A stretch of DNA of 64,000 nt from Macrostomum lignano (GCA_002269645.1 NIVC01002618.1:62001-126000), one strand, 5' to 3'; numbered from the stretch's first letter, positions 28,863 through 60,862 are shown. Notes: generated by a model not told the origin, from the letters alone. Made by a program: numbers and translations.

Positions 28863-31800
28863 TATCAAGTTCTAGCAGTTGTACTGCTGCTGTGCCATCT
28901 GTTGAGGCCAGTGATATCAGATGGCAATCCAAATAATGGCCAAGAAGACAGACAAGTGGGCCTGGCACTTATACAGGCTATTGCCACTAGTGAGCCTGCT
29001 TATACCCCCACTGACCATGTGGCTTGTCAGTCTGGGAATCCTCGCTGTCAGCTTGACCAAAGAGCTTTTGAGGTAAAGTTTGGGAATAAAAACAATTTTT
29101 GTTGAACAATGCTGATTTGTAGCTTAAGGCTTAAAATTCTAGGAAGAGCCCAGTAATAAATAGTTAGATCATTAGGAAGGGATTAGGGTAGTTCAATGTT
29201 ATTTGAATAGGCTTGGGGTAGTTCAAGGTAATTATAATAGTATCAAAGTAGTTCAAGGTCATTAGGATAGGATTAGGATCGTTCAATGTCATTAAGATAG
29301 GATTAGGGTAGTTCAAGGTCATTAGGATAGGATTAGGATCGTTCAATGTCATTGAGATAGGATTAGGGTAGTTCAAGGTCATTAAGATAGGATTAGGGTA
29401 GTTCAAGGTCATTAGGATAGGATTAGGATCGTTCAATGTCATTGAGATAGGATTAGGGTAGTTCAAGGTCATTAGGATAGGATTAGGGTAGTTCAAGGTC
29501 ATTAGGATAGGATTAGGATCGTTCAATGTCATTAGGATAGGATTAGGATCGTTCAATGTCATTAAGATAGGATTAGGGTAGTTCAAGGTCATTAGGATAG
29601 GATTAGGATCGTTCAATGTCATTGAGATAGGATTAGGGTAGTTTAGTGTCATTAGGATATGATTAGGGTAGTTCAAGGTCATTAGGATAGGATTAGGGTA
29701 GTTCAAGGTCATTAGGATAGGATTAGGGTAGTTCAAAGTCATTAGGATAGGATTAGGGTAGTTCAAGGTCATTAGGATAGGATTAGGGTAGTTCAAGGTC
29801 ATTAGGATAGGATTAGGGTAGTTCAAAGTCATTAGGATAGGATTAGGGTAGTTCAAGGTCATTAGGATAGGATTAGGGTAGTTCAAGGTCATTAGGATAG
29901 GATTAGGATAGTTCAAGGTCATTAGGATAGGATTAGGATAGTCTCAGGGTAGTTCAAGGTCATTAGAATAGGATTAGGATAGTTCAAGGTCATATGGATG
30001 AGTATGATATTGCAAGGTCACTGATGCGTGTGTGGCAGTGGTTCGCAGTGAAAATAGGTCACTAACTGGTGAAATTGATTCCACCAATATCAGGCCATAA
30101 CGCGGCTTCATTCGCTTCTTGACGACGACAAAAATGGCGCCGTAGACGCCGCGGAAGCTGAGGGGTTCGCTCGCGAGGAGCTGGCTTACGCTACGGACTT
30201 TGAGCGGGCCAGCGCCATCAATCGCGAGGATCCCGGCGTGTCAACGCGCGAACTCTGGAGCCTGTGGCGCGCCTCAGACACCTACAACTGGACTGCCGAT
30301 GAGGTTCACTTGTTTCTATATTTATATTATATCGATTTTTACAATCGCCATATTCGATATCAACATCCTATTATCGATTTTCAAGATCCCAATTATCGAT
30401 TTTCAAGATTCCAATTATCGATTTTCAAGATCCTAATTATCGATTTTCAAGATCCCAATTATCGATTTTCAAGATCCTAATTATCGATTTTCAAGATCCC
30501 TTTAATGATCGATTTTCAGGATCTCTTTAATTATCGATTTTCAAGATCCCAATTTTTGATTTTCACGATCCCAATTATCTATTTTCAAGATCCCAATTAT
30601 CTATTTTCAAGATCCCAATTATCTATTTTCAAGGTCCCAATTATCTATTTTCAAGATCCCAATTATCTATTTTCAAGATCCCAATTATCTATTTTCAAGG
30701 TCCCAATTATCTATTTTCAAAATCTCAATTATCGATTTTCAAGATCCCAATTATCTATTTTCAAGATCCCAATTATCGATTTTCAAGATCCTAATTATCG
30801 ATTTTCAAGATCCCAATTATCGATTTTCAAGATCCTAATTATCGATTTTCAAGATCCCTTTAATGATCGATTTTCAGGATCCCTTTAATTATCGATTTTC
30901 AAGATCCCAATTTTCGATTTTCAAGATCCCAATTATCTATTTTCAAGATCCCAATTATCGATTTTCAGGATCCCAATTATCTATTTTCAAGATCCCAATT
31001 ATCGATTTTCAAGATCCCAATTTTTGATTTTCACGATCCCAATTATCTATTTTCAAGATCCCAATTATCTATTTTCAAGATCCCAATTATCGATTTTCAA
31101 GATCCCAATTATCGATTTTCAAGATCCTAATTATCGATTTTCAAGATCCCTTTAATGATGGATTTTCAAGATCCAAATTATCTATTTTCAAGATCCTAAT
31201 TATCGATTTTCAAGATCCTAATTATCGATTTTCAAGATCCCTTTAATGATGGATTTTCAAGATCCAAATTATCTATTTTCAAGATCCCCATTATCTCTTT
31301 TCAAGATCCCAATTATCGATTTTCAAGATCCCAATTATCGATTTTCAAGATCCCAATTATCGATTTTCAAGATCCCAATTATCGATTTTCAAGATCCTAA
31401 TTATCGATTTTCAAGATCCCTTTAATTATCGATTTTCAAGATCCCTTTAATTATCGATTTTCAAGATCCCTTTAATTATCGATTTTCAAGATCCCTTTAA
31501 TTATTGATTTTAAGATCCTAATATTCGACATCGCTATCCTGTCTTAACTCTCAGAGCCAATATTAGAACATTTTGGATAAGTTTTAATTATACTAATCAC
31601 AAGCCGCTCAATAATATTTCAGGTGAGTGCCTGGACGGAGCAGCAGGTCGGCCTCCCAGAACTGGCTGTTACAATGCGTCACCTGGGCATTGACGGTCCT
31701 CACCTACCGTTGCTGACGGAACCGGGATCGCATCACCATCAGGCTCAGAGTCTGGCTCTGTCAGCCCTTCTGCGAGCTCTGACACCTGCGCAGCGGCGTA

Positions 31801-34800
31801 GGCTGGCGATCAAAGCCATGGACCTCGTTCTGTTCGGCCCGCCCAAGAGTGAGTGCGATTTTGGAGACTGTCGTTTTCGTTCGAGTTGTTCTTCTGCAAA
31901 TATTGGTGCTGGGTTTTGAGGGGTCACTGGTGGTTGTAGGAGGTTAGGGTTGTGATTTTAGGGGGGGGTCGGGTAGTGATTGTAGGTGGGGTCAGGATGG
32001 TGATTGTAGGAGGTCAGGGTGGTGATTGTAGGGGGGTCAGGATGGTGATTGTAGGGGGTCAGGATAGTGATTGTAGGGAGGTCAGGATAGTGATTGTAGG
32101 GAGGTCAGGATAGTGATTGTAGGGAGGTCAGGATGGTGATTGTAGGGGGTCAGGATGGTGATTGTAGGAGGTCAGGGTGGTGATGTTAGGGGGGGTCGGG
32201 TTGTGATTGTAGGTGGGGTCAGGATGGTGATTGTAGGAGGTCAGGGTGGTGATTGTAGGTGGGTCAGGATGGTGATTGTAGGGGGTCAGGATAGTGATTG
32301 TAGGGAGGTCAGGATAGTGATTGTAAGGAGGTCAGGATAGTGATTGTAGGGAGGTCAGGATGGTGATTGTAGGGGGTCAGGATGGTGATTGTAGGAGGTC
32401 AGGGTGGTGATGTTAGGGGGGGGGGTCGGGTAGTGATTGTAGGTGGGGTCAGGATGGTGATTGTAGGGGGGTCAGGATGGTGATTGTAGGGGGGTCAGGA
32501 TGGTGATTGTAGGGGGGTCTTGACTTAGCTGCAGGGCTGTCCCGGAGGGGACACAGCGGGAAGGCGCGGGCGCCCATTCCGCTAGTCCCTGAACGGCCGA
32601 CGCGTCGCTATGGACGGAGGGTTGGCGCCGCCCAGGGAGGTCCCCCAGTGTCGCCAGCAGCTATGGTGCTCTCTGGAAAGGAGAGTTCAGCCCTGCGGGT
32701 GGCCCGAAGGTAGCGCATGAGCTGATTAAAGTTTTCGGGTTTGCACGCTTCAGTAATAGATGTGTGTGGCCCGAGGTAAGTGAGTCTGGCCCGCGTGAAG
32801 GCGGGACAGATGCTGACGAAATGCTCAGCGGTTTCGTCACCTGAGTTGCAGAAACTACAGGTGGCGTTGGTGGCGTTGCCCTGCAGGTACTGGTGCCTGG
32901 AGAAGCAGCCGTGACCAGAGAGGGTCATGGTGGCAGCCCGGATGTCTCTGCGCGAGAGGCGCAAGAGGAGCTTCCGGAGCTGGTGAGAGGGCTGAGGGAC
33001 AGCGCCTCTGGATTGCCTGCAGTTCGTGCGGTTCGCCCAAGTCGAGCGGTGCTGAGTCCTGATCCACGCTTTGATGCGCGAGTCGATGACACAGCCAGGA
33101 ATCGGGACAAGAGGTTCGGGGCCGAGAGAGGAGCCGGAGGCACCAACTTTTGCAAGGGTGTCAGCCAACTCATTTCCTCGGATCCCCACATGCCCCGGAA
33201 CCCACTTAAGGGTAATTTTGTTGGCGGAACCCAACACATTGAGGAGTTTGATACAGTCAAGGACTGTAGCAGAGTTGGTGCTGCAGCCACTGATGGCGTG
33301 CAAGGCAGCTTGGCTGTCCGAATGGAAAATGATGTTCTTACCAGTAACGCCAGTGGCGAGAAGCTCTGCAGTGCAGGAGCTGATGGCCAGAACTTCATTT
33401 TGGAAAACACTGGAGTTGACCCCAGTGTATTGAGCGTGGGTAGCGATGACCCTCCCGTTCAGAAAGATTCCAACACCAAAGCCGGTGTTGGCTGACTGCT
33501 TAGAACCGTCGGTGTAGCAATGAAGCTCACCAGGGTTCCAATGGTCATTGATGTTATCGCGCGAGTCGATAGCTACGGAGTAGCGCTGTCTCAGGTTGAG
33601 CGTTGAGGCAATGCCATCGGTGAAGACGCGATTGGCCTGACACTCGTTGAGAAAGTTGAGGCACAGATCGCTATGCGGGACAAGGTTCCGCTTAGCAGGT
33701 GCTCTCATGTAAATGAATTTGACGCCGGCATCAATTAGACGCCGCGTCGTTCTAGCCGCCTCACCCCTGATGAAGAGGTCAAGAGGCGGAAGATTAAGAA
33801 AGGCCCCCATGCCAGCAAAGGGCGTGGACCTGGTGGCGTTGCAGATGAGCCTACACGCTCTGCCTTGGATCGTGTTGAGCAGGTCTGCATGGCTTTTGAC
33901 CTGGGTAGCGCTAACCCAGACAACAGAGGCGTACGTAATGGCAGGTCTAACTACGGAAGTATAGATCCACCAAAGCCGCTTTGGGGATAGACCCCAAGAA
34001 GTGCCAAGTGCTCGTCGGAGCTGGGCCAGGATGGCTGAGGCACGCTTAGCTTTTGCTTTCACGTGGAAGGACCAGTTGAGCCGGTGGTCAAGTGTGACCC
34101 CGAGACATCTGGTCTGGTGCGCGAAGGCAATATCTCTGCCGTAGAGCTGCAGAGGACGTATGTTCCAGCGTAGTCTGCTGGTAAACATAATGGCAACGGT
34201 TTTGGGCTCAGAGAGTTCCAAACCATTGTCATTGGCCCAGGATTCTGCTTTGCGGATAAAGCTCTGCATCAGATCCCTGAGCGTGCTGGGAGACGGTCCT
34301 GCCACAATGGCCGTGACGTCATCAGCATACCCGACTTTGAAGACGGGGTCAGGTCGGGAGTCACTCAGAAGAGCGTCCATGACCAGGTTCCAGAGCGTCG
34401 GGGTGAGGACTCCGCCTTGGGGTCCACCCTTACAGACTCTGGTGGAGGCAGTTTGCCCAAGAAGTTGGGCAGTGACCGTACGGTTGGAGATCATGTACAT
34501 GATCCACCGTATGAGGGTAGCATGAGCTTTGCGATTTTGAAGGGCCCTCTGAAACGCTTCAAAGATAACGTTGTCGAAGGCGCCAACAATGTCAAGAAAG
34601 AGAGCCAGGGCGTAACCGTCACCCAGTACCGCCCGTTCAATCTTTTCGACAATCGCATGCAGGGCGCTGTCAGTCGACCTCCCGGTACGGAAGGCGTGCT
34701 GATTATTGCTGAGGGGCATCGCTGTCAGCTCGCAGGAGAGCAGCCGCCAGAGAATAAGCCTCTCAGTGAGCTTAAGCATTGCTGACGTTAAGCTAATTGG

Positions 34801-37800
34801 CCGGAAGGCCTTGACGCTTTGGTAGTCACCCTTCCCAGGTTTGGGAATAAAGACTACTCGAGCTTCAGTCCAGCTTTTGGGAACGTATCCCAGCTGGATA
34901 GAGGCCCGCATAAGATTGCGGGTGAGTCTCAGGAACGAGGGTATCTTGGCTGCTTCACGAAGGAGAACAGGGTAGATACCATCAGGTCCAGGAGATTTGA
35001 AGGGTTTGAAGGTTCTGACCGCACGAGCGATTAGGTCTTCAGTGACAATGCCCGCCGCTAGGGTGGCTCCATCCATCGAATGGTTGGGCTCCGGTCTAGC
35101 AGTAGGTACCCTCGGGAAGAATGTGCTAAGCATATGCTGAAGCACTTCTTCAGGGTCTTTAGTAAGAGAGCCATCATCTTTTTTCATCATGGCTAATTTG
35201 GACATTTTGTCCATTGTAAGGGCCTTGACAAGCCTAGAAGTAGGTCTGTCTTGATCCAATTCATTGCAGAATTGGCGCCACTTACATTCCTTGGCCTTGC
35301 GCACTTCAGATTTGAAATTGCGGGAGGCTTGCCGGAAAAGCTCCATGTCCTCCGGGTTTCCGGTCTTCATGGCACGGCGATGAAGGCTTTTGGCCTTCCG
35401 CCTGAGTTTCCCCAGCTCCGGGTTCCACCACGGCGCCGAGGTCTTGCCTCTGTAGGCGCGAGCAGGACAAGCCGCTTCGTAGGCTGCAATAATGCAACCT
35501 GTCAGCGTCTCAGCCATATGATCCACATCCTCGCAGGTCTCAATCGGACGTAAGTCCGTGAGTTCCTGCAGGTGCAGATCAAGGGCAGCCTTGTAGGCCG
35601 CCCAATCAGTGTTGCGGATATTGCGTCTCCAAGTGATCGGAGACTGGGTTTTAGTGTCCGCGATATTAAAGGCATAAAGCAGTGGTCAGACAGGGAGGGC
35701 TCCTCAGACCAGACTCTCCACTCCTTGACTCTGTCAAAGAGTCTTGGGGTAACGAGTGTGGCGTCGAGGACCTCGGTCCATCTGCCATTATTAAAGGTAG
35801 GAGTGCTGCCGCGGTTGCAGAGCATGAGGTTTGTGTTAGAGATGAGGGCCAGAAGCTCCTCTCCTCTAGTGTTGGTATCTTTGCTGCCCCAGTGCTTGTG
35901 GTGCGCGTTGAGGTCGCCCCCTAAGCACAGCTCAGCGTTCTGGGACTCGCAGTACTGCGCAAGGCGCAGTAAACTCTCGGGAGCAGGGTCTCTGTCGCCT
36001 GGGATATAAACCGAGGCAACAAGACACGTACGCGGAGAGAAATGATTAGATTGGATGACGCAAAGGTCTCCATCAGAGAGATCAGTCCTCAGCCAAGCCT
36101 GGAGATGGCTAGCAGCGAGGATAGCCGCTCTAGGGCGGCTGTTCCCCGGGCCACACACATAAAAATCAGAGTAGCCAGAGGGAATGTTGGGCAACTTACC
36201 GTTGCGCATCCAGGGTTCCTGGATCAGGATGAGGCCTGGCCTGTACAGCTCAGCAATCTTCATCAGATTTACTGACGCAGATACGCAATGCTGTAAATTT
36301 ATTTGCAGACAGAATGTCGCTCCTTTGGCAGCGTGGAGCTTAGTCATACTGTATTAAATGCAATATCTGGCTAGAGCCCAGGGCATCAAGGAGACTTGGA
36401 CAACAGATCGTCCTCGTCCCAGGCCGCTGGGGCTTGACTGGGAGATGGGAGTTGGTCGACGTCCATGGCCTCCTCACCCCCACCGGCCCCCCCAGCAGAG
36501 TCCTCAGGCTCCGATGACAGGATGGAGGAAGCTTCCTCACCTGCATCTTTACCTTCAGACCCCACCAAGGTGGCCGAGGAGAGCTCGGATTCCGAAGACC
36601 CGGCCTCGTCCTCAACTCCTTCTCCGACTGGCAGGTTTGGTTCCCGGGGCTCGGCCGGAGCCGTTACCGCGGTCGCCGAACTGCTGCTAGCAGAGGGGCG
36701 AGATGCAGCTTTGGCTTTGGGATCGGCTTGCGCCTTTCCTTGGGCCTTAGACTGCGCCCCGCTCTTGCCGGAGATGCCGGGGTTGGCAGTAGCCTTCCCT
36801 TTGGCAGACTTTCCTCGGCGCAACTTGAGCTTGAGGGCACCCAGCTGGAAAGAGGATCCATTAGGGTACCGACTCGCCCAAGTGCTGGAAAGGCCGAGGA
36901 CAATTGAGTTGCCCGTCTCCCCCCTGCGGACTTTACGGTGATACACCAGTCCACTAGCAGGGAGGTCGGGGTTCAGACGCAGTAGGACCCGGCGAATAAC
37001 GTCTGGTCCAGCTGCGGTGCTCTTAGCAGGGACGAAAACCACATAGGGTATCGTCTTTGGACGCTGGCCCTCGCGAAGAAAAAGAGCTCCGCCAAGGTCA
37101 GCATCCAAGGAGACCGTCGGTAGCCGCTGGAGCAGCCGCCGAGCGTCCTCCTCGCTGCTAGGAGCAATAAGAACGAATGTGCTTCGCAGCACCATCCGCT
37201 CAACGCCGATGGAGATTCCCTCCTCGACAGTCAGCTCAATCAGATAGGAGTCAACAGCACTCCACACTTTTTGAAGCTGATCAGTGGTCCAGTCCTGGTC
37301 GCGACCTTGGATGATCACTCCCGGGATTTTGGCCTTGGCCTTCGCCGCAAAGGTAGCTCCCGAAGGAACCTCCTTGTTGGCAGTGGCCATTTGTTGCGCC
37401 GTGGTTTCGGCCTCAGCAGCCGCGGCAGCAGCTCCAGGGAGCGCCGCCGCTGAACTACTGGAGCTTCCACCGGCCGGCCCGCCTGGTTGCCTTGGGACTC
37501 CAGTCGCTTCAGCATCCATGGTGGACGCCGCCGCTTTGGCCCCCGCAGCTCCCTTCTTGGCCTGCCTTTTGGCGCGTTGTTTAGCGCGTTTGCGCTCAAG
37601 CCGAGCCCGCTGAGCTTCATCGGATCTGCCAGATTTGGCCGGTCCTTTAGGCTCAGAGCTCGCGGTTCCCTTAGATCCACCAGCGGAGCTGGCAGGTCTT
37701 AGGGTATTTTGAGTTTGGTAGCTCTGGTCGGATCTGCCAGCAGAGCCAGCCGGTCCTTCCTTTGCCACAGTTGAATCAGTCGGTTGGGATCTGCCAGCAG

Positions 37801-40800
37801 GGCCGGCCGGTCCTTCGGACTGAGGTTGGGGTTTAGAAGGGTCCCCATCCCTAGAAATAGCTTGTTTATCCATAGTCGGCTCGAAGGCCATGATAGAAGG
37901 TTGGTGGGCTACCCTCAAAGGGGCGCGGTACCCACCCGGCCGCTCCACCTGACCGGGCAGTAGGCCAATAGCACCCTCAAGGCTGGCCCGACACCAGGAG
38001 GGGGACCGCTTGCGACCGGACTACTCCCCGGCCTTCCAGCCCATCGGCACGGTCAACACCTTAGGCATTAGAGAGTACGTTGAGCAGTACCACGGCCTGC
38101 AGGTTGGCGAGCCAGACCCGCATACCCAAATTCGGCCGAAGCCACTGGATAGGGTCGCCAGCGCCGGAGCCCAGTCTGTCCAGCAGCCCTAGGGACTGCC
38201 TTGAACACACGCGGGGACGAGTACCCTGGGTCGACTTGCGAGACAGCGTGGGGGGGGGTCTGCGGCTGCCAGAGGCAAATAGAGGGTGCAGACCTCCCAC
38301 CAGCCTTGACCTGCTGAAGATAGGGGCAGGCGTGAAGCATCGCAGACCTTAGCCCATGGGCCTAGTCTGTCTCATACTTCACTGGCATGCTGAATACGCC
38401 TTCGCGTGAGGTTAGGGTTGTGATTTTAGGGGGGGGGTCGGGTAGTGATTGTAGGTGGGGTCAGGATGGTGATTGTAGGAGGTCAGGGTGGTGATTGTAG
38501 GGGGGTCAGGATGGTGATTGTAGGGGGTCAGGATAGTGATTGTAGGGAGGTCAGGATAGTGATTGTAGGGAGGTCAGGATAGTGATTGTAGGGAGGTCAG
38601 GATGGTGATTGTAGGGGGTCAGGATGGTGATTGTAGGAGGTCAGGGTGGTGATGTTAGGGGGGGTCGGGTTGTGATTGTAGGTGGGGTCAGGATGGTGAT
38701 TGTAGGAGGTCAGGGTGGTGATTGTAGGTGGGTCAGGATGGTGATTGTAGGGGGTCAGGATAGTGATTGTAGGGAGGTCAGGATAGTGATTGTAAGGAGG
38801 TCAGGATAGTGATTGTAGGGAGGTCAGGATGGTGATTGTAGGGGGTCAGGATGGTGATTGTAGGAGGTCAGGGTGGTGATGTTAGGGGGGGGGGTCGGGT
38901 AGTGATTGTAGGTGGGGTCAGGATGGTGATTGTAGGGGGGTCAGGATGGTGATTGTAGGGGGTCAGGATGGTGATTGTAGGGGGGTCAGGATGGTGATTG
39001 TAGGGGGTCAGGATGGTGATTGTAGGGGGGTCAGGATGGTGATTGTAGGGAGGTCAGGATGGTGATTGTTGGGGGCGTCATTATGGTGATTGTAGGTGGG
39101 GTCAGGATGGTGATTGTAGGGGGGTCAGGATGGTGATTGTAGGGGGTCAGGATGGTGATTGTAGGGGGGTCAGGATGGTGATTGTAGGGGGGGTCAGAAT
39201 GGTGATTGTAGGGGGGTCAGGATGGTGATTGTAGGGGGGTCAGGATGGTGATTGTAGGGGGGTCAAGATGGTGATTGTAGGGGGTCAGGATGGTGATTGT
39301 AGGTGGGGTCAAAGTGATGATTGTATGGAGAGTCAGGATGGTAATTGTAGGGGGTCAGGACTCTAGGGTTCAGGACAATGGCAGAAAAGTGGGGTCAGGA
39401 TGCAGTCACAGGGGAGGTCAGTGAATGCCCACCCCTGTCCCGCAGAGGCGCACAGCATAGTGAAGGATGGACTGCTGGCCCTGCTGCTGGTGATCATCCT
39501 GGCAGGCAGCTGGCTGGTGCTGGTTCAGCGACAGTTCTTCGAAGATCACCGCCTGAAAGTGGTGGACAACTTGAAGATTGCGGAACAGTCGCTGACTGAT
39601 TTGCAGCTCAAGTGAGAGCGAAATTTATTGCTTGACTGTGATCGCGAATTATAAACTTGTCAATCAGTCAATCGTTGCGAATCTTGCCAACCAATCGCAG
39701 GTTGAACACCGCAGAGAAGCGCAGCGAAAAAGTTCGAGCCGAGAAAGTGCAGCTTGAAGAGCTGTACAAGAGAGAGATCTGCGGCCTGAAGGTTGGTCTG
39801 AATTTCTTCCGGTCTCCGCTGGTGCCTTTCTCTGCCCTCTGCTTCCGCCCCTCTTCTGCCCCCTCCTCTTCCCCCCTCTTCTTCCGCCCTTCTTCCCCCT
39901 CTGCTTCCGCCCCTCTTCTGCCCCCTCCTCTTCCCCCTCTTCTTCCGCCCCTCTTCTGCCCCTCTTCTTCCACCCTTTTTCTGCCCCTCCTCTTCCCCCT
40001 CTTCTTCCCCCTCCTCTTCCCCCTCTTCTTCCCGCTTTTCTTCCCCCTCTTCTTCCGCCCCTATTCTTCCGACACTTCTGTCTCTTTTCCTCCTATCCAT
40101 CCGCCCCTCTTCCCACCGTTCTCTTTCCGTCCCCACTTTATTTCATCCGCTGTTTTCCTCCCTCTGTTTTCGCATTTTTCTCACCCATCCCGCACCGCAC
40201 AGCAGGAACAAGCCAGCCACTGGAGCCGTTCTCGCTGGCTGCCTGGTAGCCAATCAGATTCCACCGGCCAATCAGCTCAGGGTCACGTGACCGTACCGGC
40301 TGACCAATCGGAGCCAGCCGGGCTGCAAGAAAAACTGGAGCAGGCGGAGCAGGAGGTCAGCCGGTTGCGAGTGCTATTGGATCAAACCGCTCGATTGCAG
40401 CAGCCGGTTGGCTTCTGCGGCGCTGGCGGAGCGGAGCTGCAACATCTGCTGCAGATGAGCTACGAGACTGAGCTGCGCTACTGCAATGCCAACCGGTTGA
40501 AGGCCGAGGAACAGCTGCTGAAGGCTTCCGAAGGGGTGAGTCTCGGTTTGTAGCTTTGCTCTGCTCTTCTATGCTGACTTTGGTGCTGCAATGTGGATTC
40601 TGTCCTTTTTGGGGTTGGGATTTGGGATTCGTGTTTTTAGGGATTTGGGGTGTTGGGATTTGGGATTCGTGTTTTTAGGGATTCGGGGTGTTGGGATTTG
40701 GGATTCGTGTTTTTAGGGATTTGGGGTGTCGGGATTTGGGATTCGTGTTTTTTTTAGGGATTTGGGGTGTTGGGATTTGGGATTCGTGTTTTTAGGGATT

Positions 40801-43800
40801 CGGGATGTTGGGATTTGGGATTCGTGTTTTTAGGGATTTGGGGTGTTGGGATTTGGGATTCGTGTTTTTAGGGATTTGGGGTGTTGGGATTTGGGATTCG
40901 TGTTTTTAGGGATTCGGGGTGTTGGGATTTGGGATTCGTGTTTTTAGGGATTCGGGGTGTTGGGATTTGGGATTCGTGTTTTTAGGGATTCGGGGTGTTG
41001 GGATTTGGGATTCGTGTTTTAGGGATTCGGGTGTTGGGATTTGGGATTCGTGTTTTTTGGGATTCGGGGTGTTGGGATTTTGGATTCGGGGTGTTGGGAT
41101 TTGGGATTCGTGTTTTTAGGGATTCGGGGTGTTGGGATTTGGGATTCGTGTTTTTAGGGATTCGGGGTGTTGGGATTTGGGATTCGTGTTTTTAGGGATT
41201 TGAAGTGTTGGGATTTGGGATTCGTGTTTTTAGGGATTCGGGGTGTTGGGATTTTTAATTCGGGGTGTTGAGATTTGGGATAAGGGTGTTGGGATTTGGG
41301 ATTCGTGTTTTTAGGGATTCGGGGTGTTGGGATTTGGGATTCGTGTTTTTAGGGATTCGGGATGTTGGGATTTGGGATTCGTGTTTTTAGGGATTCGGGG
41401 TGTTGGGATTTGGGATTCGTGTTTTTAGGGATTCGGGGTGTTGGGATTTGGGATTCGTGTTTTTAGGGATTCGGGATGTTGGGATTCGTGTTTTTAGTGA
41501 TTCGGGATGTTGGGATTTGTGTTTTTAGGGATTCGGGGTGTTGGGATTTGGGATAAGGGTGTTGGGATTTAGAATTCTGGGTGTTGGGATTCTCGGTTTT
41601 GGGATTTAGTCATTGGGATTTGGGATTTAATTTTAGGGATTTGGGATTCTAGGTGTTGGGATTTGGGATTCTAGGTGTTGGGATTTAAAATACAAGTTGT
41701 TGGGATTGTGGGTGTTGGGATTTGGAATTCTGGGTGTTGGGATTTGGGATTCAAATTGTTGGGATTTGAAATACAAATTGTTTGGATTTGGGAAGGTTTA
41801 TTCTGACGGCACTGTGTAATCAGGTATATTTATTCTGCGAGCTGAGCGCACCCCAGTTTTAAAAAATCCCCACTGCATAAATTTGCTTCCCCAACAAAAG
41901 CTGAACCGCCTCACCAAGAAGCGCACGGGCCTTCTTGCCGGATTCCGCCTGAGCCACTGCGGCTCGTTCGACCAGCTGGAGACCAGCATAGCCTTGGCTA
42001 GGTACACTTGAAGGTCACCAATCTGTCTCGCTCCCCTCCTCACTTAGTTAATATTTATAAATTGTTGTCTTCTATTATTTGTACCCTGTTTAGCATTTTA
42101 GTACAAAATGTTTAGCAAATCTGCATTTATTTGTTCATAGTTTTGTTGCTATTTTATACAATTGATTCCGATCAATATGTTGTATTCTTTTTAGAATTAA
42201 TTTTAGTTTATTATTAAATTGCCAAATTGCATGTTTATTCGGAGAAAATCAATTTTTAGCCTAGGTGTCTACTTACAGTAGGCAGACTAGCTCAGTAGCA
42301 CTATAATTCACAGAATTTGAACTGTCTGATTCCAGTTGGATAGGCTGAAACGCAAGCAATACTCTGTCATTGGCTTGTTTCGCAATGCTTTCGACTCGGC
42401 TGAGATGGTGGACATTGTTGAGCAGGACATTGTTAGGGCTAAGTAAGAGAGCTCGAGTGAGCGCTCAATTGAGCTGCTCCGCTTTGGCTTAACATTATTT
42501 TTTACTTTGTGCTACAAGTTTCTTATTACTGAGGTGTCATGGTTTTATCGCTTAGCATTTGTGGCTGAAGTGGCGCTTTTTACTTATTGAAATCGTGTGA
42601 AGCACCCAAGTACCGAATATAATGCCTCTTGTGTGTCTGAAACCTGAAACTCAGCCTCTGATGTCTATAGCCTGAACCTTCCGATAGCCTGAACCCTCAG
42701 ATAGCCTGAAACCTCAGATAGCTTGAACCCTCATATAGCCTGAACCCTCCGGTAACCTGAACCCTCCGGTAACCTGAACCATCCGGCAACCTGAACCCTC
42801 AGATAGCCTGAACCGTCCGGTAACCTGAACCCTCAGATAAACTGAACTCTCAGACAACCTGAACCCTCAGATAACCTGAACCCTCAGATAACCTGAACCC
42901 TCAGATAACCTGAACCCTCAGATAACCTGAACCCTCAGATAACCTGAACCCTCAGATAACCTGAACCCTTAGATAACCTGAACCCTCAGATAACCTGAAC
43001 CCTCAGATAACCTGAACCCTCAGATAACCTGAACCCTCAGATAACCTGAACCCTCAGATAACCTGAACCCTCAGATAACCTGAACCCTCAGATAACCTGA
43101 ACCCTCAGATAACCTGAACCTGCCTCCTTCATCAACATAGCTGGTCGCAAGGCATTGAGCTCAGTAACCGCAATAAGCACTCACTAACACTAACACTAAA
43201 ACACTAACTTTCGCTGGCTACAATAATTTTCTATAATTTCATAACCAACATTAACCTGGAATTAAGCTCAGCTAAGCTTTGAAAACAATAAAATTTGAGT
43301 TTCTCATTTCAAATTTTATTCAATGCCCGCAGAGAATTCGCCGACAAAGTGAAGCTGGACATTCAGGAGCGACTTCAGCGCTGGTCAAGAATTGAACAGT
43401 TGATAGGATTCAGCATCATCCTGCCCGAGCCTGAGCAGGGCAGAGGTCTGTGCTCACCCGGTTGTCGTGCAGGATTGTGTGCTTGTGTGCTTTTTAAATC
43501 CTTTTGGGTGGTTTTGGATTGGTTGGCTACAATATTTAGAATTCTCATTCATATTGGCAATGTGACTGTGTACTAGGTCATAGAGGCTAATGAGTCATAG
43601 AGGCTAATGAGTCATAGAGGCTAATGAGTCATAGAGGCTAATGAGTCATAGAGGCTAATGAGTCATAGAGGCCAATGAGTCATAGAGGCTAATGAGTCAT
43701 CGGGTCATAGAGGGTAATGAGTCATCGGGTCATAGAGGGTAATGAGTCATCGGGTCATAGAGAGGATAATGAGTCATAGAGGCTAATGAGCCATCGGGTC

Positions 43801-45664
43801 ATAGAGGGTAATGAGTCATTGGGTCATAGAGGGTAATGAGTCATTGGGTCATGGAGAGTAATTAATCATCGGGTCATAAAGGGTAATGAGACATCGGATC
43901 ATAAAGGGTAATGAGACATCGGGTCATAAAGGGTAATGAGACATCGGATCATAAAGGGTAATGAGACATCGGGTCATAAAGGGTAATGAGACATCGGGTC
44001 ATAAAGGGTAATGAGACATCGGGTCATAAAGGGTAATGAGACATCGGGTCAATAAAGGGTAATGAGACATCGGGTCATAAAGGGTAATGAGACATCAGGT
44101 CATAAAGGGTAATGAGACATCGGGTCATAAAGGGTAATGAGACATCGGGTCATAAAGGGTAATGAGACATCGGGTCATAAAGGGTAATGAGACTTACGGA
44201 TCGTACAGGGTAAAGAGTCATGGGGCTATAGAATGTGATTTATTGTGTCACAGAGAGGATATCAGTCATCTGCTTATAAAAAAAGAAATAGTGCTGTGGT
44301 CACAGAAGGCATCGGTGTCATGTGGGCAGCAGTCACCAAGCTGGCAATTGGCCAATTGCAGGACTCAACATCCGGCCTTACGCCAACCTGTGGCGCAGGA
44401 AAACTGCCGAGAAATTCAAGCGTTCGGCAACTCACGCCAGCTGTGAGTATGAAAATAAACTTTTGCTGCATATTTACTGATTGGTTAGTAGTATAGTTAG
44501 TTCATTTGGTTTGCCGTGAGTTGGCCTTTTGTACGAGCTATAAAAACGTACTAAGCTTAATTACCTGCCTTCTTACTAATCACTCGCATCTGCTCAGCTT
44601 TGTTCGCCAAGCACGCCAGCTCGTCTTCGATGCACGAATTGATGCTGCGGGAGGGCCGCCACCACCAGTTGAACATCAACAGCTGCGATGGAGGCAGTCA
44701 TCACTGTGCTGCTGCGGTGTGCTCAGATGCTCAAAACCTGCCTGCTCTTGTGGCTAAACGTGAGTTCACTTTGATTGACAGGTTTTGATTCCTTTTACTG
44801 AATTTAAGTTTACTCTGAGTGTCTTTCAAGCTCACTCTGGGTGTCTTTATAGTTCACACTGGATGTCTTTCGAGTTCACTCCGGGTGTCTTTCGAGTTCA
44901 CTCTGTGTGTCTTTGTTAGAGTTCACTCTGTGTGTCTGTTAGAGTTCACTTTGTGTGTCTTTGTTAGAGTTCACTCTGTGTGTCTTTGTTAGAGTTCACT
45001 TTGTGTGTCTGTTAGAGTTCACTTTGTGTGTCTTTGTTAGAGTTCACTCTGTGTGTCTTTGTTAGAGTTCACTCTGTGTGTCTTTGTTAGAGTTCACTCT
45101 GTGTGTCTTTGTTAGAGTTCACTCTGTGTGTCTTTGTTAGAGTTCACTCTGTGTGTCTTTGTTAGAGTTCACTTTGTGTGTCTTTGTTAGAGTTCACTTT
45201 GTGTGTCTTTGTTAGAGTTCACTCTAGGTGAACTCTGGGTGGCTTTGTTAGAGTCCTCTCTAAGTATCTTAAAGGTATTCTATATAATATTATTGGAACT
45301 GTTTCGTGTAGGATGCAGCGAACTTGAGCTTCAGTGTTGGAAGGGTGAGAACTCCCCGCAATACAAGGTTAAGCATGCGGTCGGGTGTGCAGCTTAGCGC
45401 TCGATTACGATCGTGGCTTTTGCGGTGTTTGTAACTAAGCTGTAGTTGGCACTTGACCCCTGCATTCAAGTATTTTCAGTACTGCCTATAAAGTTTATAA
45501 TAGGGTATGAGCATACTTAGCTTGCTCTACTCATCTTAGTAGTGACTAGAAGGCATAAATGCATCTTGTTTATGCTGCACGGTGCACGACCTGTAACGAA
45601 CTTAAACACAAACTGTACTTAATAGTGGCAGATTGAAGGCACTTTTATTGGCCTTCTGTCTGCG

Positions 45665-45697
<33 letters not shown>

Positions 45698-45772
45698 GTC
45701 TGTGTCTGTCTGTCTGTCTGTCTGCATGTCTGTCTGTCTCTCTGTCTGTCTGTCTGTTTGTTTGTCTGTCTG

Positions 45773-45838
<66 letters not shown>

Positions 45839-45870
45839 CATGTCTGTCTGGCTGGCTGTCTGTCTCTGTT

Positions 45871-45911
<41 letters not shown>

Positions 45912-45914
45912 GGC

Positions 45915-45956
<42 letters not shown>

Positions 45957-46068
45957 CCTGTCTGTGTCTGTCTGTCTGTCTGTCTGTCTGTCTGCCTGCC
46001 TGTCTGGCTGTCTGTCTGTCTGCCTGTCTGTCTGTCTGTCTGTCTGCCTGTCTGGCTGTCTGTCTGCA

Positions 46069-46101
<33 letters not shown>

Positions 46102-46124
46102 GCCTGTCTGGCTGTCTGTCTGCA

Positions 46125-46167
<43 letters not shown>

Positions 46168-46569
46168 GTCTGTCTGTCTGTCTGTCTGCCTGCCTGTCTG
46201 GCTGTCTGGCTGTCTGTCTGGCTGTCTTTAATATTATCTGCGAGTTTGCTACCAGCTTGTCGTACGTATCGTAACTAAACCGGCAGTTCAACTGAAGCAG
46301 CGCCAACCATCCCTCGTCTCCCCGCCCGCAGCCGCAGCCCAGAGCTCCGCCGGCGGCCCCGTTGCGGTTAAAAACGGCGCCCAATCGGGCTGCGGAACTG
46401 CGACAGCTGTCTCTTTCTCGCTGCCTGCCGAGTAAGGCATGACGGATGCTGCATTGATTGCTCAGGATATGAGCGCGGACAGACAGACAGACAGACAGGA
46501 GACACAAACACACAGACAGGCAGGCAGACAGACAGGCAGGCAGACAGACAGACAGGCAGACAGACAGAC

Positions 46570-46623
<54 letters not shown>

Positions 46624-46643
46624 CAACAGACAGACCAACAGAC

Positions 46644-46713
<70 letters not shown>

Positions 46714-50786: not shown

Positions 50787-53700
50787 TCACATGGAGTTGA
50801 CCACAGTGCACAGGAAGGCGTGCCTTTGGCAGACCTCCATGAAGTTCTTCTTCAAGAATGACACCACCTCGGGGTGGAACATGTTGAACCTGTAGTGCAG
50901 CTTGGGGTACTCGGTGGCCTTCTGGATCAAGCCGTTCTTGTCGTCTGTGTAGTACTGGCGGATGCTGCGACTCATCTTTTCGTAGCTCATGTTCATGTTG
51001 CCCTTGGTCATGCCCCACGACCGGGCCGCGCCGCTGCTGTCAACGAATCGGAACAGGCCCTCCTGGATGTTCAGCCACTCCACTGTGGGATCCTCATTCA
51101 TCAGCAGCCGGAGGATGTGCTCCCACAGGTGATCGCCGCCAACTTTCTCCGGCGACGCGGCTGAGTTCAATTAATGTAATTGGCGGTTCAGGCTGTGCAT
51201 GAACTTCTTGCGAAAATTATTTGCCCACAATGTCACACTTACAATTACCTTCAGGAAGAATTGCACTTTTAACATTGACCTTTGTAGCCTTCAGGAATAG
51301 CAAAAAAATGAGATTAATCTTTGGGCTACAAAATAATCTCAACGTTCGACTTTGACCTTTGACCTTTAGGCTGTCGGATCGGAGTTTTCGGGGTTTTGCG
51401 GTTTTTTCTTAAATTCCCTTTGTGCCTAAAATCGAAAATTTTAGCATTTGGGGATCTCTATGGGGAGAAATGGGATAAATGGGGATTTCATGTGAACCAA
51501 AGGCTCTAAAATGGAGCCTCGAGCCTGAAGCATTGGGTCCCGGTTTCTCTACGCCAATCCCTTCAATTGGAGCTTTAAATGCTTTAATGCTTTTTATGAA
51601 TTTTCGAACTGCTCAATGTTGACCTTCATTTGACCTCAGATAAACAAATCATGCAAGTTAACAACAAATTTTATTTGTTTAAATCGCTTACCCAGGTAGC
51701 TGGCGTTGGTCATTTTCATTGGAATGCTGTCGCAGACTGCAATTCAGATATGATGCGGGGTTAAGAATGCATAAAACTTCAATTCTAAGAAACCAAAGCC
51801 GGAAATTTCCTATTAATTAACAATTAGCACCTTGCTTCCAGGCATCAAGCTCGTATTGCAACTTCAAAGCGATTCGCTTGTCAAAGATTTCGCCAAATAT
51901 GTTTATATAGCTCTCTAGCGGCGTGTTCGGCTGAGCCCTGATGCAGGTCTCCACCATGCGCAGCTTCTGTACTCGCTCTGCCAGCTCAGCCGGATTCGGC
52001 TGGTGCAGGTGCTTGGTGAGCATGCACTTCAGCCAGAACATCCGCTGCTTCGGATCCCAACCTGCGGGGTGCGAGATTTGTACAGTGTTGCACAGTTTGT
52101 ACGAATGTTTGCAGTCTGTCTACCGATATGTAGTCTGTATCTACCGATATGTAGCTTGTACCACCAATATGTACAGTCTGTATCTACCGATATGTACGGT
52201 CTGTATCTACCGATATGTAGCTTGTACCACCAATATGTACAGTCTGTATCTACCGATATGTACGGTCTGTATCTACCGATATGTAGCTTGTACCACCAAT
52301 ATGTACAGTCTGTATCTACCGATATGTACGGTCTGTATCTACCGATATGTAGCTTGTACCACCAATATGTACAGTCTGTATCTACCGATATGTACGGTCT
52401 GTATCTCCGATATGTAGCTTGTACCACCAATATGTACAGTCTGTATCTACCGATATGTACGGTCTGTATCTACCGATATGTAGCTTGTACCACCAATATG
52501 TACAGTCTGTATCTACCGATATGTAGTCTGTATCTACCGATATGTAGCTTGTACCACCAATATGTACAGTCTGTATCTACCGATATGTAGTCTGTATCTA
52601 CCGATATGTAGCTTGTACCACCAATATGTACAGTCTGTATCTACCGATATGTAGTCTGTATCTACCGATATGTAGCTTGTACCACCAATATGTACAGTCT
52701 GTATCTACCGATATGTAGTCTGTATCTACCGATATGTAGCTTGTACCACCAATATGTACAGTCTGTATCTACCGATATGTAGTCTGTATCTACCGATATG
52801 TAGCTTGTACCACCAATATGTACAGTCTGTATCTACCGATATGTAGTCTGTATCTACCGATATGTAGCTTGTACCACCAATATGTACAGTCTGTATCTAC
52901 CGATATGTAGTCTGTATCTACCGATATGTAGCTTGTACCACCAATATGTACAGTCTGTATCTACCGATATGTAGTCTGTATCTACCGATATGTAGCTTGT
53001 ACCACCAATATGTACAGTCTGTATCTACCGATATGTAGTCTGTATCTACCGATATGTAGCTTGTACCACCAATATGTACAGTCTGTATCTACCGATATGT
53101 AGTCTGTATCTACCGATATGTAGCTTGTACCACCAATATGTACAGTCTGTATTTACCGATATGTACAGTCTGTATTTACCGATATGTACGGTCTGTATCT
53201 ACTAATATATACAGTTTGTACCTACCAATATATACAGAACAGAATTTATCTACCGATATGTACAGTTTGTATCTACCGATATGTAGCTTGTACCACCAAT
53301 ATGTACAGTCTGTATCTACCGATATGTACGGTCTGTATCTACTAATATATACAGTTTGTACCTACCAATATATACAGAACAGAATTTATCTACCGATATG
53401 TACAGTTTGTATCTACTAATGTGTTCAGTCAGTATCTACCTATATGTTGAACTGTCTTTATCTACTGTTAGTACAGTCTGTATCTACCTATATGTTGAAC
53501 TGTCTTTACCTACTGTTGGTACAGTCTGTATCTACTGTCTGTACAGTCTGTATCTACTGTTGGTACAGTCTGTATCTACTGTCTGTACAGTCTGTATCTA
53601 CTGTCTGTACAGTCTGTATCTACTGTCTGTACAGTCTGTATCTACTGTTGGTACAGTCTGTATCTACTGTCTGTACAGTCTGTATCTACTGTTGGTACAG

Positions 53701-56760: not shown

Positions 56761-57295
56761 GCTGTAAATTCTCGACTTCCAATAAGATGACAGCTGACTC
56801 CAGTTCAACTTACCGAATAGTAAGTAGGTAATTATAGTACCGATTAAGAGTCATAAGAATATAGATTGTTACACAATTTCAGTATCTGTAATGGAATGCA
56901 CCATTACACTCCGCGCTGCACATGGTTAAAAAACAGCTACTTGAACGACTAACTGAATGAATTATAGAAAACAGAGCACAAACTTATACACTACACAATA
57001 CTCCATGAATTCCGAACTAGGATATCTGCTATCTGTCTCTTATCTCTGTTCCATAATGATATACTCGAGTATTGGAGACATTTCCTTCATTCCTGTGCGC
57101 ATTGATATCTGCGTAAGACAGACGTATTAGCGTCGGTTGTGGATAATATTAAATTGCTTGTGCATGCAAGCCAGTTTGTCTTGGAACTGGTACATCCGGT
57201 CACCTATTCCAGGATTAGGTGAGCTGCCTTCTGATTACGTGAGACAGCTAGAAGAAATATTTAATCAATTACGAGCTTTGGGGTTCATAAGACAG

Positions 57296-59488
57296 GGCAC
57301 CAAATCTATAGACATTACAGCAGATGGAGGCACCAAACCTACAGATACTACAGCAGCTGGAGATGCCAAATCTATAGATACTACAGCAGCTGGAGATGCC
57401 AAATCTATAGATACTACAGCAGATGGAGATGCCAAATCTATAGATACTATGGGAGATGGGGGCACCAAATCTATAGATACTATGGGAGATGGGGGCAACA
57501 AATCTATAGATACTATGGGAGATGGGGGCACCAAATCTATAGATACTATGGGAGATGGGGGCACCAAATCTATAGATACTATGGGAGATGGGGGCACCAA
57601 ATCTATAGATACTATGGGAGATGGGGGCACCAAATCTATAGATACTACAGCAGCTGGAGATGCCAAATCTATAGATACTACAGTAGATGGAGACACCAAA
57701 TCTATAGATACTACAGCAGCTGGAGATGCCAAATCTATAGATACTACAGTAGATGGAGACACCAAATCTATAGATACTACAGTAGATGGAGACACCAAAT
57801 CTATAGATACTGCAGTAGATGGAGACACCAAATCTATAGATACTACGGTAGATGGAGACACCAAATCTATAGATACTACAGTAGATGGAGGCACCAAATC
57901 TATAGATACTGCAGTAGATGGAGACACCAAATCTATAGATACTATGGGAGATGGGGGCAACAAATCTATAGATACTATGGGAGATGGGGGCAACAAATCT
58001 ATAGATACTGCAGTAGATGGAGGCACCAAATCTATAGATACTATGGGAGATGGGGGCACCAAATCTATAGATACTACAGTAGATGGAGGCACCAAATCTA
58101 TAGATACTATGGGAGATGGGGGCACCAAATCTATAGATACTTCAGTAGATGGAGACACCAAATCTATAGATACTATGAGAGATGGGGGCACCAAATCTAT
58201 AGATACTGCAGTAGATGGAGACACCAAATCTATAGATACTATGGGAGATGGAGGCAACAAATCTATAGATACTGCAGTAGATGGAGGCACCAAATCTATA
58301 GATACTATGGGAGATGGGGGCACCAAATCTATAGATACTACAGTAGATGGAGGCACCAAATCTATAGATACTATGGGAGATGGGGGCACCAAATCTATAG
58401 ATACTGCAGTAGATGGAGGCACCAAATCTATAGATACTATGGGAGATGGGGGCACCAAATCTATAGATACTACAGTAGATGGAGACACCAAATCTATAGA
58501 TACTATGAGAGATGGGGGCACCAAATCTATAGATACTACAGCAGATGGAGATGCCAAATCTATAGATACTATGGGAGATGGGGGCACCAAATCTATAGAT
58601 ACTTCAGTAGATGGAGACACCAAATCTATAGATACTATGGGAGATGGGGGCAACAAATCTATAGATACTACAGTAGATGGAGGCACCAAATCTATAGATA
58701 CTGCAGTAGATGGAGACACCAAATCTATAGATACTATGGGAGATGGGGGCACCAAATCTATAGATACTGCAGTAGATGGAGGCACCAAATCTATAGATAC
58801 TATGGGAGATGGGGGCACCAAATCTATAGATACTACAGCAGATGGAGATGCCAAATCTATAGATACTATGGGAGATGGGGGCACCAAATCTATAGATACT
58901 TCAGTAGATGGAGACACCAAATCTATAGATACTATGGGAGATGGGGGCAACAAATCTATAGATACTGCAGTAGATGGAGACACCAAATCTATAGATACTA
59001 CGGGAGATGGAGGCACCAAATCTATAGATACTACAGTAGATGGAGGCACCAAATCTATAGATACTACAGCAGATGAAGATGCCAAATCTATAGATACTAC
59101 GGTAGATTGAAGCACCAAATCTATAGATACTATGGTAGATTGAAGCACCAAATCTATAGATACTACGGTAGATTGAAGCACCAAATCTATAGATACTACG
59201 GGAGATTTAGGCACCAAATCTATAGATACTACGGGAGATTTAGGCACCAAATCTATAGATACTACGGGAGATTTAGGCACCAAATCTATAGATACTACGG
59301 GAGATTGAAGCACCAAATCTATAGATACTACGGGAGATTGAAGCACCAAATCTATAGATACTACGGGAGATGGAGGCACCAAATCTATAGATACTACGGT
59401 AGATTGAAGCACCAAATCTATAGATACTACGGTAGATTGAAGCACCAAATCTATAGATACTACGGTAGATTGAAGCACCAAATCTATA
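57296..59488. repeat. 33-bp minisatellite ACCAAATCTATAGATACTACAGTAGATGGAGAC (~66 units; frame open on both strands over most of it)
   Basis: Period 33 with ATCTATAGAT palindrome per unit. Confidence 0.95.
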
Positions 59489-60862
59489 GTTCTTTCAGCT
59501 ATAAACACAATGTCATGTAACAGTTAAACAAACATAAATTTCCCGGGCAATCAGAGCTAAGAATTAAAATACTATTAATTCTAAACTGGGAAGACACGAA
59601 CTGCGGAAGGAACAGCTCAAGAGATACGACTGGAGCCCAGAGAGGCCTGGGCATCTGCACTCAGCCTCAGCCTTCAAACTAAAATTAAGAAAACGGTGGA
59701 ACCTCCAATCTAATAGTATGGTGGCATTAAACTGTAGTATTACAATTAGATATAAGCAAGCCAGGAGACATGGAAAGTGCACTAAAAGAACGAAATCTAT
59801 TTATTTTAACATCGAACTGCATATCTTTAATTAGGTCAACAGAATTTTAAACTTACATTTTGTCACAGTTTACTGGTCTCCGGGTCTCGAAATTTTGATT
59901 TAATTGGGCTCAAGGATGCATGCAGGGTGTGCAGCAACGGTTCTTGCTAATATAAAATTTCTTTACTAGCCCTGGATGTCCAGACGTCTCAAGTTGATGC
60001 AGAATAACAAAAAACAGCACAGAGAGGAGTTCAGTTGTGCAGCTTGAGTACTACGGTACGGATGCAGAGCACAGCTACAACTGTACGCTGTTGTAGTTGT
60101 TGGTGGATGCTGGCTATTCTTCAATATGAGAATCCGAGAGGTAAACCAACCGAAGCAAAAGCGTGTTTCAACTTTCGCCTTACTATCCGAACCTCGAGCT
60201 ATTTTACTTAAAGAAGCGCCTACTCTATTCAACTGGTTGCACTCGCGCTGTACACCAAAAACTTAAGCAGTTAGAACTGAAGCGATAGATAAAAACTGCG
60301 CACTCTGCATTCGGCTCACTGTTTTCAAGAGAGTAGCTGGCTATACTCGCTAAGAACGCGCCCTTTTTTGCCTTCCTCTCGTTTAGCCTGCTTTGGTGTA
60401 TAATAAAAGGCCAGGTCAAAACGGTTCGGGGGGGGGGGGTTGCGGGGCTGCGGGCTGGACAGAGAGGCGCAAATCTGTGGCTTGGATAGTGGGGTGTCGT
60501 AAACTGCCGGGACATTGGGTTTTCAAGATTAAGACACTGCGCTTTTGGTGCAGTGTACAATTTAATGCGGCCCAATGTACATTGCCTGGCTGCGACTGAG
60601 AGCTGTTGCTGCAAGGTGGATAGAAATGGCGCGTGGCGGCTTGGGCGTGGTTCAGTTTTAGCAATTAAAAACCGGCGTCGGAGCGGGGAAGAGATTCAAT
60701 GTACATTTCAGCCCCTCCTTGAGGCACAAATCCAACCCCAACCCCACCAGAGAGCGCAGTTCGCTCACAATGCAATGCGCGCGCTAGAGAAAACAAACCA
60801 TTCTCGGGCCGTTTAGCTGGGCCTTCCGTTTCGTTTCGCCTGAGTTTGCTGACCTAACTATC

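Follow-up and report, generated by a model that had tools for sequence, protein, structure and literature searches.

The splice variants of STIM known so far insert sequence into the protein or append it, and none exchanges the apex of the SOAR/CAD domain. Mutually exclusive exons that arise by tandem duplication and are policed by reading frame and nonsense-mediated decay form a well-known class. Among STIM variants, mammalian STIM2.1 (STIM2-beta) carries an eight-residue insert encoded by exon 9, by which the activator becomes an inhibitor (PMC4411291), and exons 13L and 13B of mammalian STIM1, which give STIM1L and STIM1B, have been described as mutually exclusive (PMC8892257). The apex itself has been dissected in human STIM1: F394 is required for Orai1 binding, H398, one helical turn from F394, is required to turn binding into gating, and the spacing of the two residues matters (PMC10616141). 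The H398F protein binds Orai1 without opening the channel, as do the other substitutions tested, with Trp being partial (PMC10616141). Here we describe a STIM gene in a 64,000-nucleotide stretch of the genome of the flatworm Macrostomum lignano (GCA_002269645.1 NIVC01002618.1:62001-126000; the whole stretch is henceforth termed the window), in which two homologous exons, A and B, each encode a version of this apex and cannot be combined in one reading frame.

The two internal exons lie between the STIM exons that end at 40535 and start at 43333. Their coordinates (counted from the first letter of the window), translations, splice dinucleotides and phases match those given in a preliminary description of this DNA, which had read them as paralogous, mutually exclusive exons.

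41901-42001, + strand: exon A, canonical-type SOAR apex, 101 nt, phase 0 to 2, LNRLTKKRTGLLAGFRLSHCGSFDQLETSIALA(R)
42336-42442, + strand: exon B, Macrostomum-type SOAR apex, 107 nt, phase 0 to 2, LDRLKRKQYSVIGLFRNAFDSAEMVDIVEQDIVRA(K)

The upstream exon ends in …KASEG (GAAGGG/gtgagt at 40535). Exon A is preceded by …ccccaacaaaag, has the borders aaaag/CTG...TAG/gtacac and encodes LNRLTKKRTGLLAGFRLSHCGSFDQLETSIALA plus two bases, AG; exon B is preceded by …ctgattccag, has the borders ttccag/TTG...TAA/gtaaga and encodes LDRLKRKQYSVIGLFRNAFDSAEMVDIVEQDIVRA plus the two bases AA. The downstream exon begins at 43333 after …cccgcag (cgcag/AGAATTC). Its first base closes the split codon, which reads R after A (AG+A) and K after B (AA+A), and is followed by EFADKVKLDIQERLQRWSRIEQLIGF. 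The preliminary description had this exon start with REFAD; EFADKV is indeed encoded there, but the R comes from the split codon and had been counted twice.

The length of each exon is 3n+2 nucleotides, and the reading frame is therefore kept only when an mRNA contains one of the two without the other. With A alone or B alone, the frame stays open into the downstream exon. Translation of the other two versions bore out the broken frame that the preliminary description had stated for them: inclusion of both exons leads to a stop after …ASWIG, five codons into B (TGA at 42346-42348), and skipping of both leads to a stop 21 codons into the downstream exon. The exon junctions 43445/44362 and 44444 lie 3' of these stops, and nonsense-mediated decay usually requires a stop upstream of an exon junction. 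The earlier reading of the pair is partly supported: A and B are borne out as homologous, frame-incompatible exons, and their use in the animal is what we infer from the evidence weighed below.

Homology was assessed with an exon profile built from 137 non-Macrostomum STIMs and run on every open stretch, in six frames, of the window. Exon A (27.1 bits, E=2.8e-7) and exon B (21.0 bits, E=2.2e-5) both matched, and the next best match had E=1.6. The window thus contains exactly two copies of the apex exon, which lie next to each other and agree in strand and phase, and the homology of both to the apex exon is far beyond chance. That the two are paralogous to each other, as had been proposed, is confirmed by their common match to a profile of a single STIM exon, of which Lingula and Dicrocoelium have one. 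They share 10 of 34 residues (~29%), so the duplication is not recent.

These properties place the locus between the known systems. STIM2.1 offers a functional parallel, in that its alternative splicing changes SOAR/CAD itself and the coupling to Orai; as the preliminary description had stated, its insertion falls in the same domain, entering at the junction equivalent to 40535 (…AKDE/AEKIKK) (PMC4411291). The difference is that STIM2.1 gains a cassette insert without homology to its neighbours, whereas here a paralogous exon of 34–36 residues would be exchanged. Exons 13L and 13B of STIM1 differ in another way: they are C-terminal, outside SOAR, away from the Orai-binding apex and not homologous copies of each other. 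In its architecture, the pair resembles the tandem-duplication class, with neighbouring homologous exons that agree in phase, have lengths not divisible by three and share a flanking donor and acceptor, and with a default exon beside a weaker one. It departs from this class in that the copies are very old (~29% identity) and differ in length by 6 nt, and the pair is known here from genomic sequence and protein models. The splice switch had been put forward as apparently undescribed, in agreement with the searchable literature on STIM, flatworm and invertebrate splicing, which gave no such case: nothing relevant was returned on exon swaps in the SOAR part of STIM, on tandem duplication of STIM exons, on Macrostomum STIM or on splice variants of invertebrate STIM, and STIM isoforms go unmentioned in a 2026 preprint on Schistosoma STIM/Orai.

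Judged by its sequence, the STIM gene in the window is intact and belongs to a Macrostomum flatworm. The domain order of STIM is present, with a luminal EF-hand, SAM, a single transmembrane helix, coiled-coil 1 (CC1) and then SOAR. The SOAR/CAD domain (PF16533) is recognized in the A-spliced version with 92.6 bits (E=1.7e-26) and in the B-spliced version with 89.5 bits (E=1.5e-25), the Pfam cut-off being 25, and human SOAR (3TEQ) and C. elegans SOAR (3TER) are the best PDB sequence matches, with end-to-end alignment of both spliced versions. In tblastn searches, nemertean, brachiopod and other STIMs gave blocks colinear with 30088-30309 (EF-hand DDDKNGAVD), 31623-31847 (SAM), 39439-39621 (transmembrane helix), 40305-40535, the A/B position and the last SOAR exon. 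The nearest proteins are five fragmentary UniRef models of Macrostomum lignano, 93-100% identical per exon; the window sequence departs from all five at the same few positions. The sequence by itself would place the window in this flatworm, a very close relative or a subgenome copy. All STIM exons examined are open and have normal U2-type splice sites. In addition to A and B, they are as follows.

30088-30309 (borders approximate), + strand: canonical EF-hand exon of STIM, LDDDKNGAVDAAEAEGF, located by tblastn of Tubulanus, Lingula and other STIMs
31623-31848, + strand: SAM-domain exon of STIM (…KAMDLVLFGPPK), donor A/gtgagt, located by tblastn and splice sites
39446-39611, + strand: exon for the transmembrane helix and the start of CC1, 100% match to residues 1-55 of model P0001, with splice sites
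39701-39791, + strand: CC1 exon (LNTAEKRSEKV…ICGLK), located by model match and splice sites
40206-40535, + strand: exon that spans the last part of CC1 and the first SOAR helix as far as …LLKASEG, donor GGG/gtgagt, phase 0
43333-43445, + strand: common downstream exon with the last SOAR helix, (R/K)EFADKVKLDIQERLQRWSRIEQLIGFSIILPEPEQGR, located by translation and splice sites
44362-44444, + strand: next STIM exon, (G)LNIRPYANLWRRKTAEKFKRSATHAS

The exon at 40206-40535 starts at a tandem cagcag acceptor (NAGNAG, 40203-40208), where either 40203 or 40206 can serve as acceptor; P0001 takes the second AG, and one Gln may be included or omitted.

An exhaustive profile search gave 218 STIM clusters, and 144 non-Macrostomum apex segments were compared. 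The apex exon encodes 34 residues in 137 of these 144 segments, with the consensus CEKLRKKRSxFMGSFRIAHGSSIDDVDNRILxAK. Exon A also encodes 34 residues and keeps the KKR motif (equivalents of K385, K386 and R387) as well as the Phe and the His in the F394 and H398 columns, the latter His being at least 90% conserved in the STIM alignment. Nemertean and brachiopod STIMs pick A, not B, in tblastn, and the mean BLOSUM score against the 144 outgroup segments is 52 for A and 43 for B (shuffled sequences, ~10 +/- 3), with A outscoring B in 119 comparisons. Lingula and the fluke Dicrocoelium each have a single discrete apex exon of 101 nt, the length of A, with the same phases and borders; a second copy was not found at the Dicrocoelium (L002) or Lingula (L004) loci. 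The mite STIM model P0007 (Medioppia subpectinata CAG2101287.1) contains the N-terminal half of SOAR and the apex exon twice in series, which resembles a duplication made during assembly or annotation more than it does a pair of alternative exons.

B-type segments of 36 residues were found in Macrostomum proteins only; the nematode segment is equal in length. Besides the gene in the window, they occur in two further M. lignano STIM paralogue families, P0006/P0152 and P0089/P0062, and the three B-types are mutually identical at 16-21 of 36 residues (44-58%). Set against this, the identity of A and B is low (10 of 34 residues), so that the A/B split is older than the paralogues. The paralogous loci of P0006 and P0152 (L001 and L003) each have a 107-nt B-type exon, and no A-like exon is present in the introns that flank it. 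By these comparisons, the ancestral, canonical form is A, while B is particular to the lineage and recurs in two other M. lignano paralogues. In the simplest history, an old tandem duplication would have made A and B before the STIM paralogues arose, after which the P0006/P0152 family would have retained B alone, while the gene in the window kept both exons along with a canonical EF-hand. The loss of A is read from the P0006 and P0152 loci, the P0089/P0062 family being known from proteins alone. The P0006/P0152 paralogue (L001 10001-16323, M. lignano NIVC01000623.1; L003) has a degenerate EF-hand, LEDVRSAWADDDL, in place of DDDKNGxVD, and may therefore have lost the usual mode of luminal Ca2+ sensing.

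By the available annotation, exon B is used. It is in frame in four of the five matched M. lignano UniRef models (P0001, P0003, P0004 and P0005), its splice sites are good (ttccag/, TAA/gtaaga), and the paralogues use their B-type exon. The fifth model, P0002, is error-ridden and includes A and B together. Although its A segment, in the +1 frame, is identical to the window at 33 of 33 residues, we rejected it as a test of conservation: the frame of P0002 stays open only with two shifts of 1 nt and an alternative acceptor, a pattern typical of indel-prone assemblies, and we treat the model as an artefact.

For the locus as a whole, we lean towards the view that A and B are a genuine pair of alternative exons, made exclusive by the frame, in which B is the default and A is ancestral and regulated. 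Several observations weigh against this. No transcript or protein record with A in frame was found in the collections searched, with an index that is lossy and missed the paralogue P0006, and P0002, the sole model with A, reads it out of frame. A protein search centred on A with short flanks returned two candidates, none of them significant, from the same index that had missed this clear paralogue; the index appears to hold no Macrostomum RNA assemblies of this gene. Exon A has the weakest acceptor (aacaaaag/, purine-rich, AAG) and the weakest donor (TAG/gtacac) of the gene. Two M. lignano paralogous loci, Dicrocoelium and Lingula have a single apex exon, which leaves the pair without conservation support elsewhere. 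Finally, docking/selector pairing was not found, an inverted-repeat search of 41780-43332 giving short AT-rich matches only. The weak splice sites of A would fit a regulated minor exon but also a dying one.

The latter would be the case if A were a silent relic, left in the intron without productive splicing after B had taken over. This explanation, which we regard as unlikely but worth serious attention, accounts for the weak acceptor and donor, for the matched models, in none of which A is in frame (B is used in four, and A stands in the wrong frame in the fifth), and for the complete loss of A from the paralogous genes at the loci examined. It is harder to reconcile with the state of the exon itself. 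The frame of exon A is open, its length and phase are exactly the ancestral ones, and neither splice dinucleotide has been lost. The KKR motif and the near-invariant His are still in place, and the exon scores above the used exon B against the outgroups. The G+C content at third codon positions (GC3) of exon A is 0.85, compared with 0.60-0.76 in the other STIM coding exons, even though its neighbouring introns have 42% and 31% GC in a gene whose introns range from 31% to 44%, which argues against long neutral decay. Since the A/B split predates paralogues with B exons that are only 44-58% identical, neutral drift over this period should have eroded a relic and erased these features. Together, they favour a functional exon A.

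The weak donor of A also bears on another explanation, in which A is an alternative terminal exon that ends …ALARYT-stop, with polyadenylation at an ATTAAA in the A–B intron and a STIM protein truncated inside SOAR. A stop two codons past the exon (open reading frame 41883-42011) and the ATTAAA at 42213 would suit it. The C-terminal half of A, with the start of S-alpha-4, is however as conserved as the rest, its phase fits the downstream exon exactly, and one ATTAAA is expected by chance in an intron of 31% GC, so that we consider this explanation very improbable.

A broader doubt concerns the gene rather than exon A. In a polyploid genome, the whole gene copy could be redundant and silent or nearly so, in which case neither isoform would matter physiologically. 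The searches returned older UniRef models only and no transcript-based NCBI (PAA) protein of the gene type, and a 5.3-kb retrotransposon and several satellites occupy its introns. Set against this, every exon examined is open and well conserved, the EF-hand is canonical where the annotated paralogue P0006 has lost it, coding GC3 is 0.60-0.85, and the splice sites are intact. We judge a silent gene copy to be improbable, and return to the alternative exon pair with the question of how its exclusivity could be enforced. Three features of the surrounding introns are relevant.

42002-42335, + strand: A–B intron, 334 nt, 31% GC, with one ATTAAA at 42213
40607-41554, + strand: G/T-rich 38-bp satellite, most of the intron upstream of A
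42667-43120, + strand: C/A-rich 17-bp satellite in the intron downstream of B

Steric exclusion was rejected, as the A–B intron has 334 nt while a paralogue splices an intron of ~80 nt, and so was incompatibility of U12 and U2 spliceosomes, as every site is GT-AG and of U2 type. The two flanking satellites, which are opposite in composition, can pair strongly with each other in long duplexes (-86 kcal/mol per 120 nt), but dinucleotide-shuffled sequences pair equally well or better (-97 +/- 6), which reflects composition only and no specific pairing. With the steric, spliceosome-type and pairing routes excluded or unsupported, the frame rule remains. The GGG runs of the satellites could still serve as intronic splicing signals. 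A perfect, A/U-rich 12-bp hairpin lies at 43288-43320, 12 nt upstream of the acceptor of the downstream exon (-12.6 kcal/mol, z=-2.8; 2 of 200 shuffles fold as well), and may sequester the branch-point or polypyrimidine region.

Under the frame rule, each productive mRNA would contain exactly one of the two exons, and mRNAs with both or neither would be removed by nonsense-mediated decay. Exon B would be the default, because of its stronger splice sites and its presence in four of the five models, and A an alternative included only when helped or when B is repressed, with competition between a weak and a strong exon setting the A:B ratio. The predicted products are two STIM proteins that are identical except for 34 or 36 Orai-contacting residues, one with the ancestral Phe-x-x-x-His apex from A and one with a derived Phe-x-x-x-Phe apex and a two-residue insertion from B. 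We infer that A is spliced in, that frame and decay maintain exclusivity, and that Orai coupling differs between the two versions.

The exchanged segment corresponds to human STIM1 residues 380-413, which comprise the end of S-alpha-1 with the basic patch, the S-alpha-2/S-alpha-3 turns and the start of S-alpha-4. Alignment to human STIM1 agrees with the earlier assignment to A380-K413, with a Phe in the F394 column of both exons and, in B, a Phe in the H398 column and two residues more than in A. The sharper difference between the exons is this exchange of His for Phe; the basic patch, which had also been listed as differing, keeps four basic residues in both. The apex of A reads G-F-R-L-S-H, the canonical pair at canonical spacing, and that of B reads L-F-R-N-A-F, a Phe-Phe pair followed by the two-residue insertion. 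At one codon of exon B (TTT, 42378-42380), the window encodes GLFRNAF where all five UniRef M. lignano copies have Leu, GLLRNAF. AlphaFold models of SOAR form confident helical hairpins with a mean predicted local distance difference test (pLDDT) score of 83.3 for A and 86.9 for B, the apex turns being less confident. The best structural match of both is 3TEQ (template modelling score 0.76-0.81), so that both exons are compatible with the fold.

By analogy with human STIM1, A would provide a classical activating apex, and B an apex that couples differently or has co-evolved with Macrostomum Orai. Inhibition of the STIM2.1 type by B would be an analogy only, resting on the Phe in its H398 column and on the human H398F protein, which binds without gating (PMC10616141). 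A comparable contrast exists between human STIM1 and STIM2 (F394 versus L485; PMC10616141), as A has Phe and His like STIM1 and the other M. lignano B exons have Leu like STIM2. In vertebrates, however, the difference is fixed between two genes, whereas here it would be made within one gene by splicing, and B lacks the His as well. C. elegans STIM has neither the F394 nor the H398 equivalent, and the human rule can thus not be transferred blindly. We offer only tentatively the further idea that one STIM gene switches its apex by exclusive splicing between a Phe-x-x-x-His and a Phe-x-x-x-Phe form, which by human analogy would be gating-competent and binding-only, respectively, as a cell-type-regulated switch of store-operated calcium entry.

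The STIM intron between the SAM and transmembrane exons contains a non-LTR (long terminal repeat) retrotransposon on the - strand.

32608-37948, - strand: non-LTR retrotransposon
36386-37948: its ORF1-like open reading frame, 520 aa
35502-36347: its endonuclease part
32608-35526: its reverse transcriptase/ribonuclease H open reading frame, 972 aa

The same 23-bp satellite, GGGGGGTCAGGATGGTGATTGTA, lies on both sides of the retrotransposon (31952-32340 and 38432-39360), which has apparently inserted into it. The stretches 45655-46227, 46478-46713 and 57137-59508, towards the 3' region of STIM, are occupied by long microsatellites, (TCTG)n and (GACA)n, and by a tandem repeat of ~2.3 kb that is open in both strands (…KSIDTMGDGGT… units). 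An open reading frame with an ETS DNA-binding domain, …LWEHILRLLMNEDPTVEWLN…MSYEKMSRSIRQYY…, lies on the - strand at 50787-51170, convergent with STIM; it had no match in the protein index.

The 34-36 residues that would be swapped are the part of STIM that binds and gates Orai, with the basic patch and the F394 and H398 equivalents. If both exons are used, the gene would provide a pair of apex variants on one protein backbone that could separate features for binding from features for gating, and it would reveal how store-operated calcium entry is adjusted from one cell type to another in a regenerating animal. On the tentative reading above, splicing of the apex would be a natural switch in the strength or the target of store-operated calcium entry, and the gene a natural experiment on the co-evolution of the apex with Orai. 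Whatever the fate of exon A, the annotated Macrostomum STIMs have a non-canonical apex without the near-invariant His, which poses a question for the gating model.

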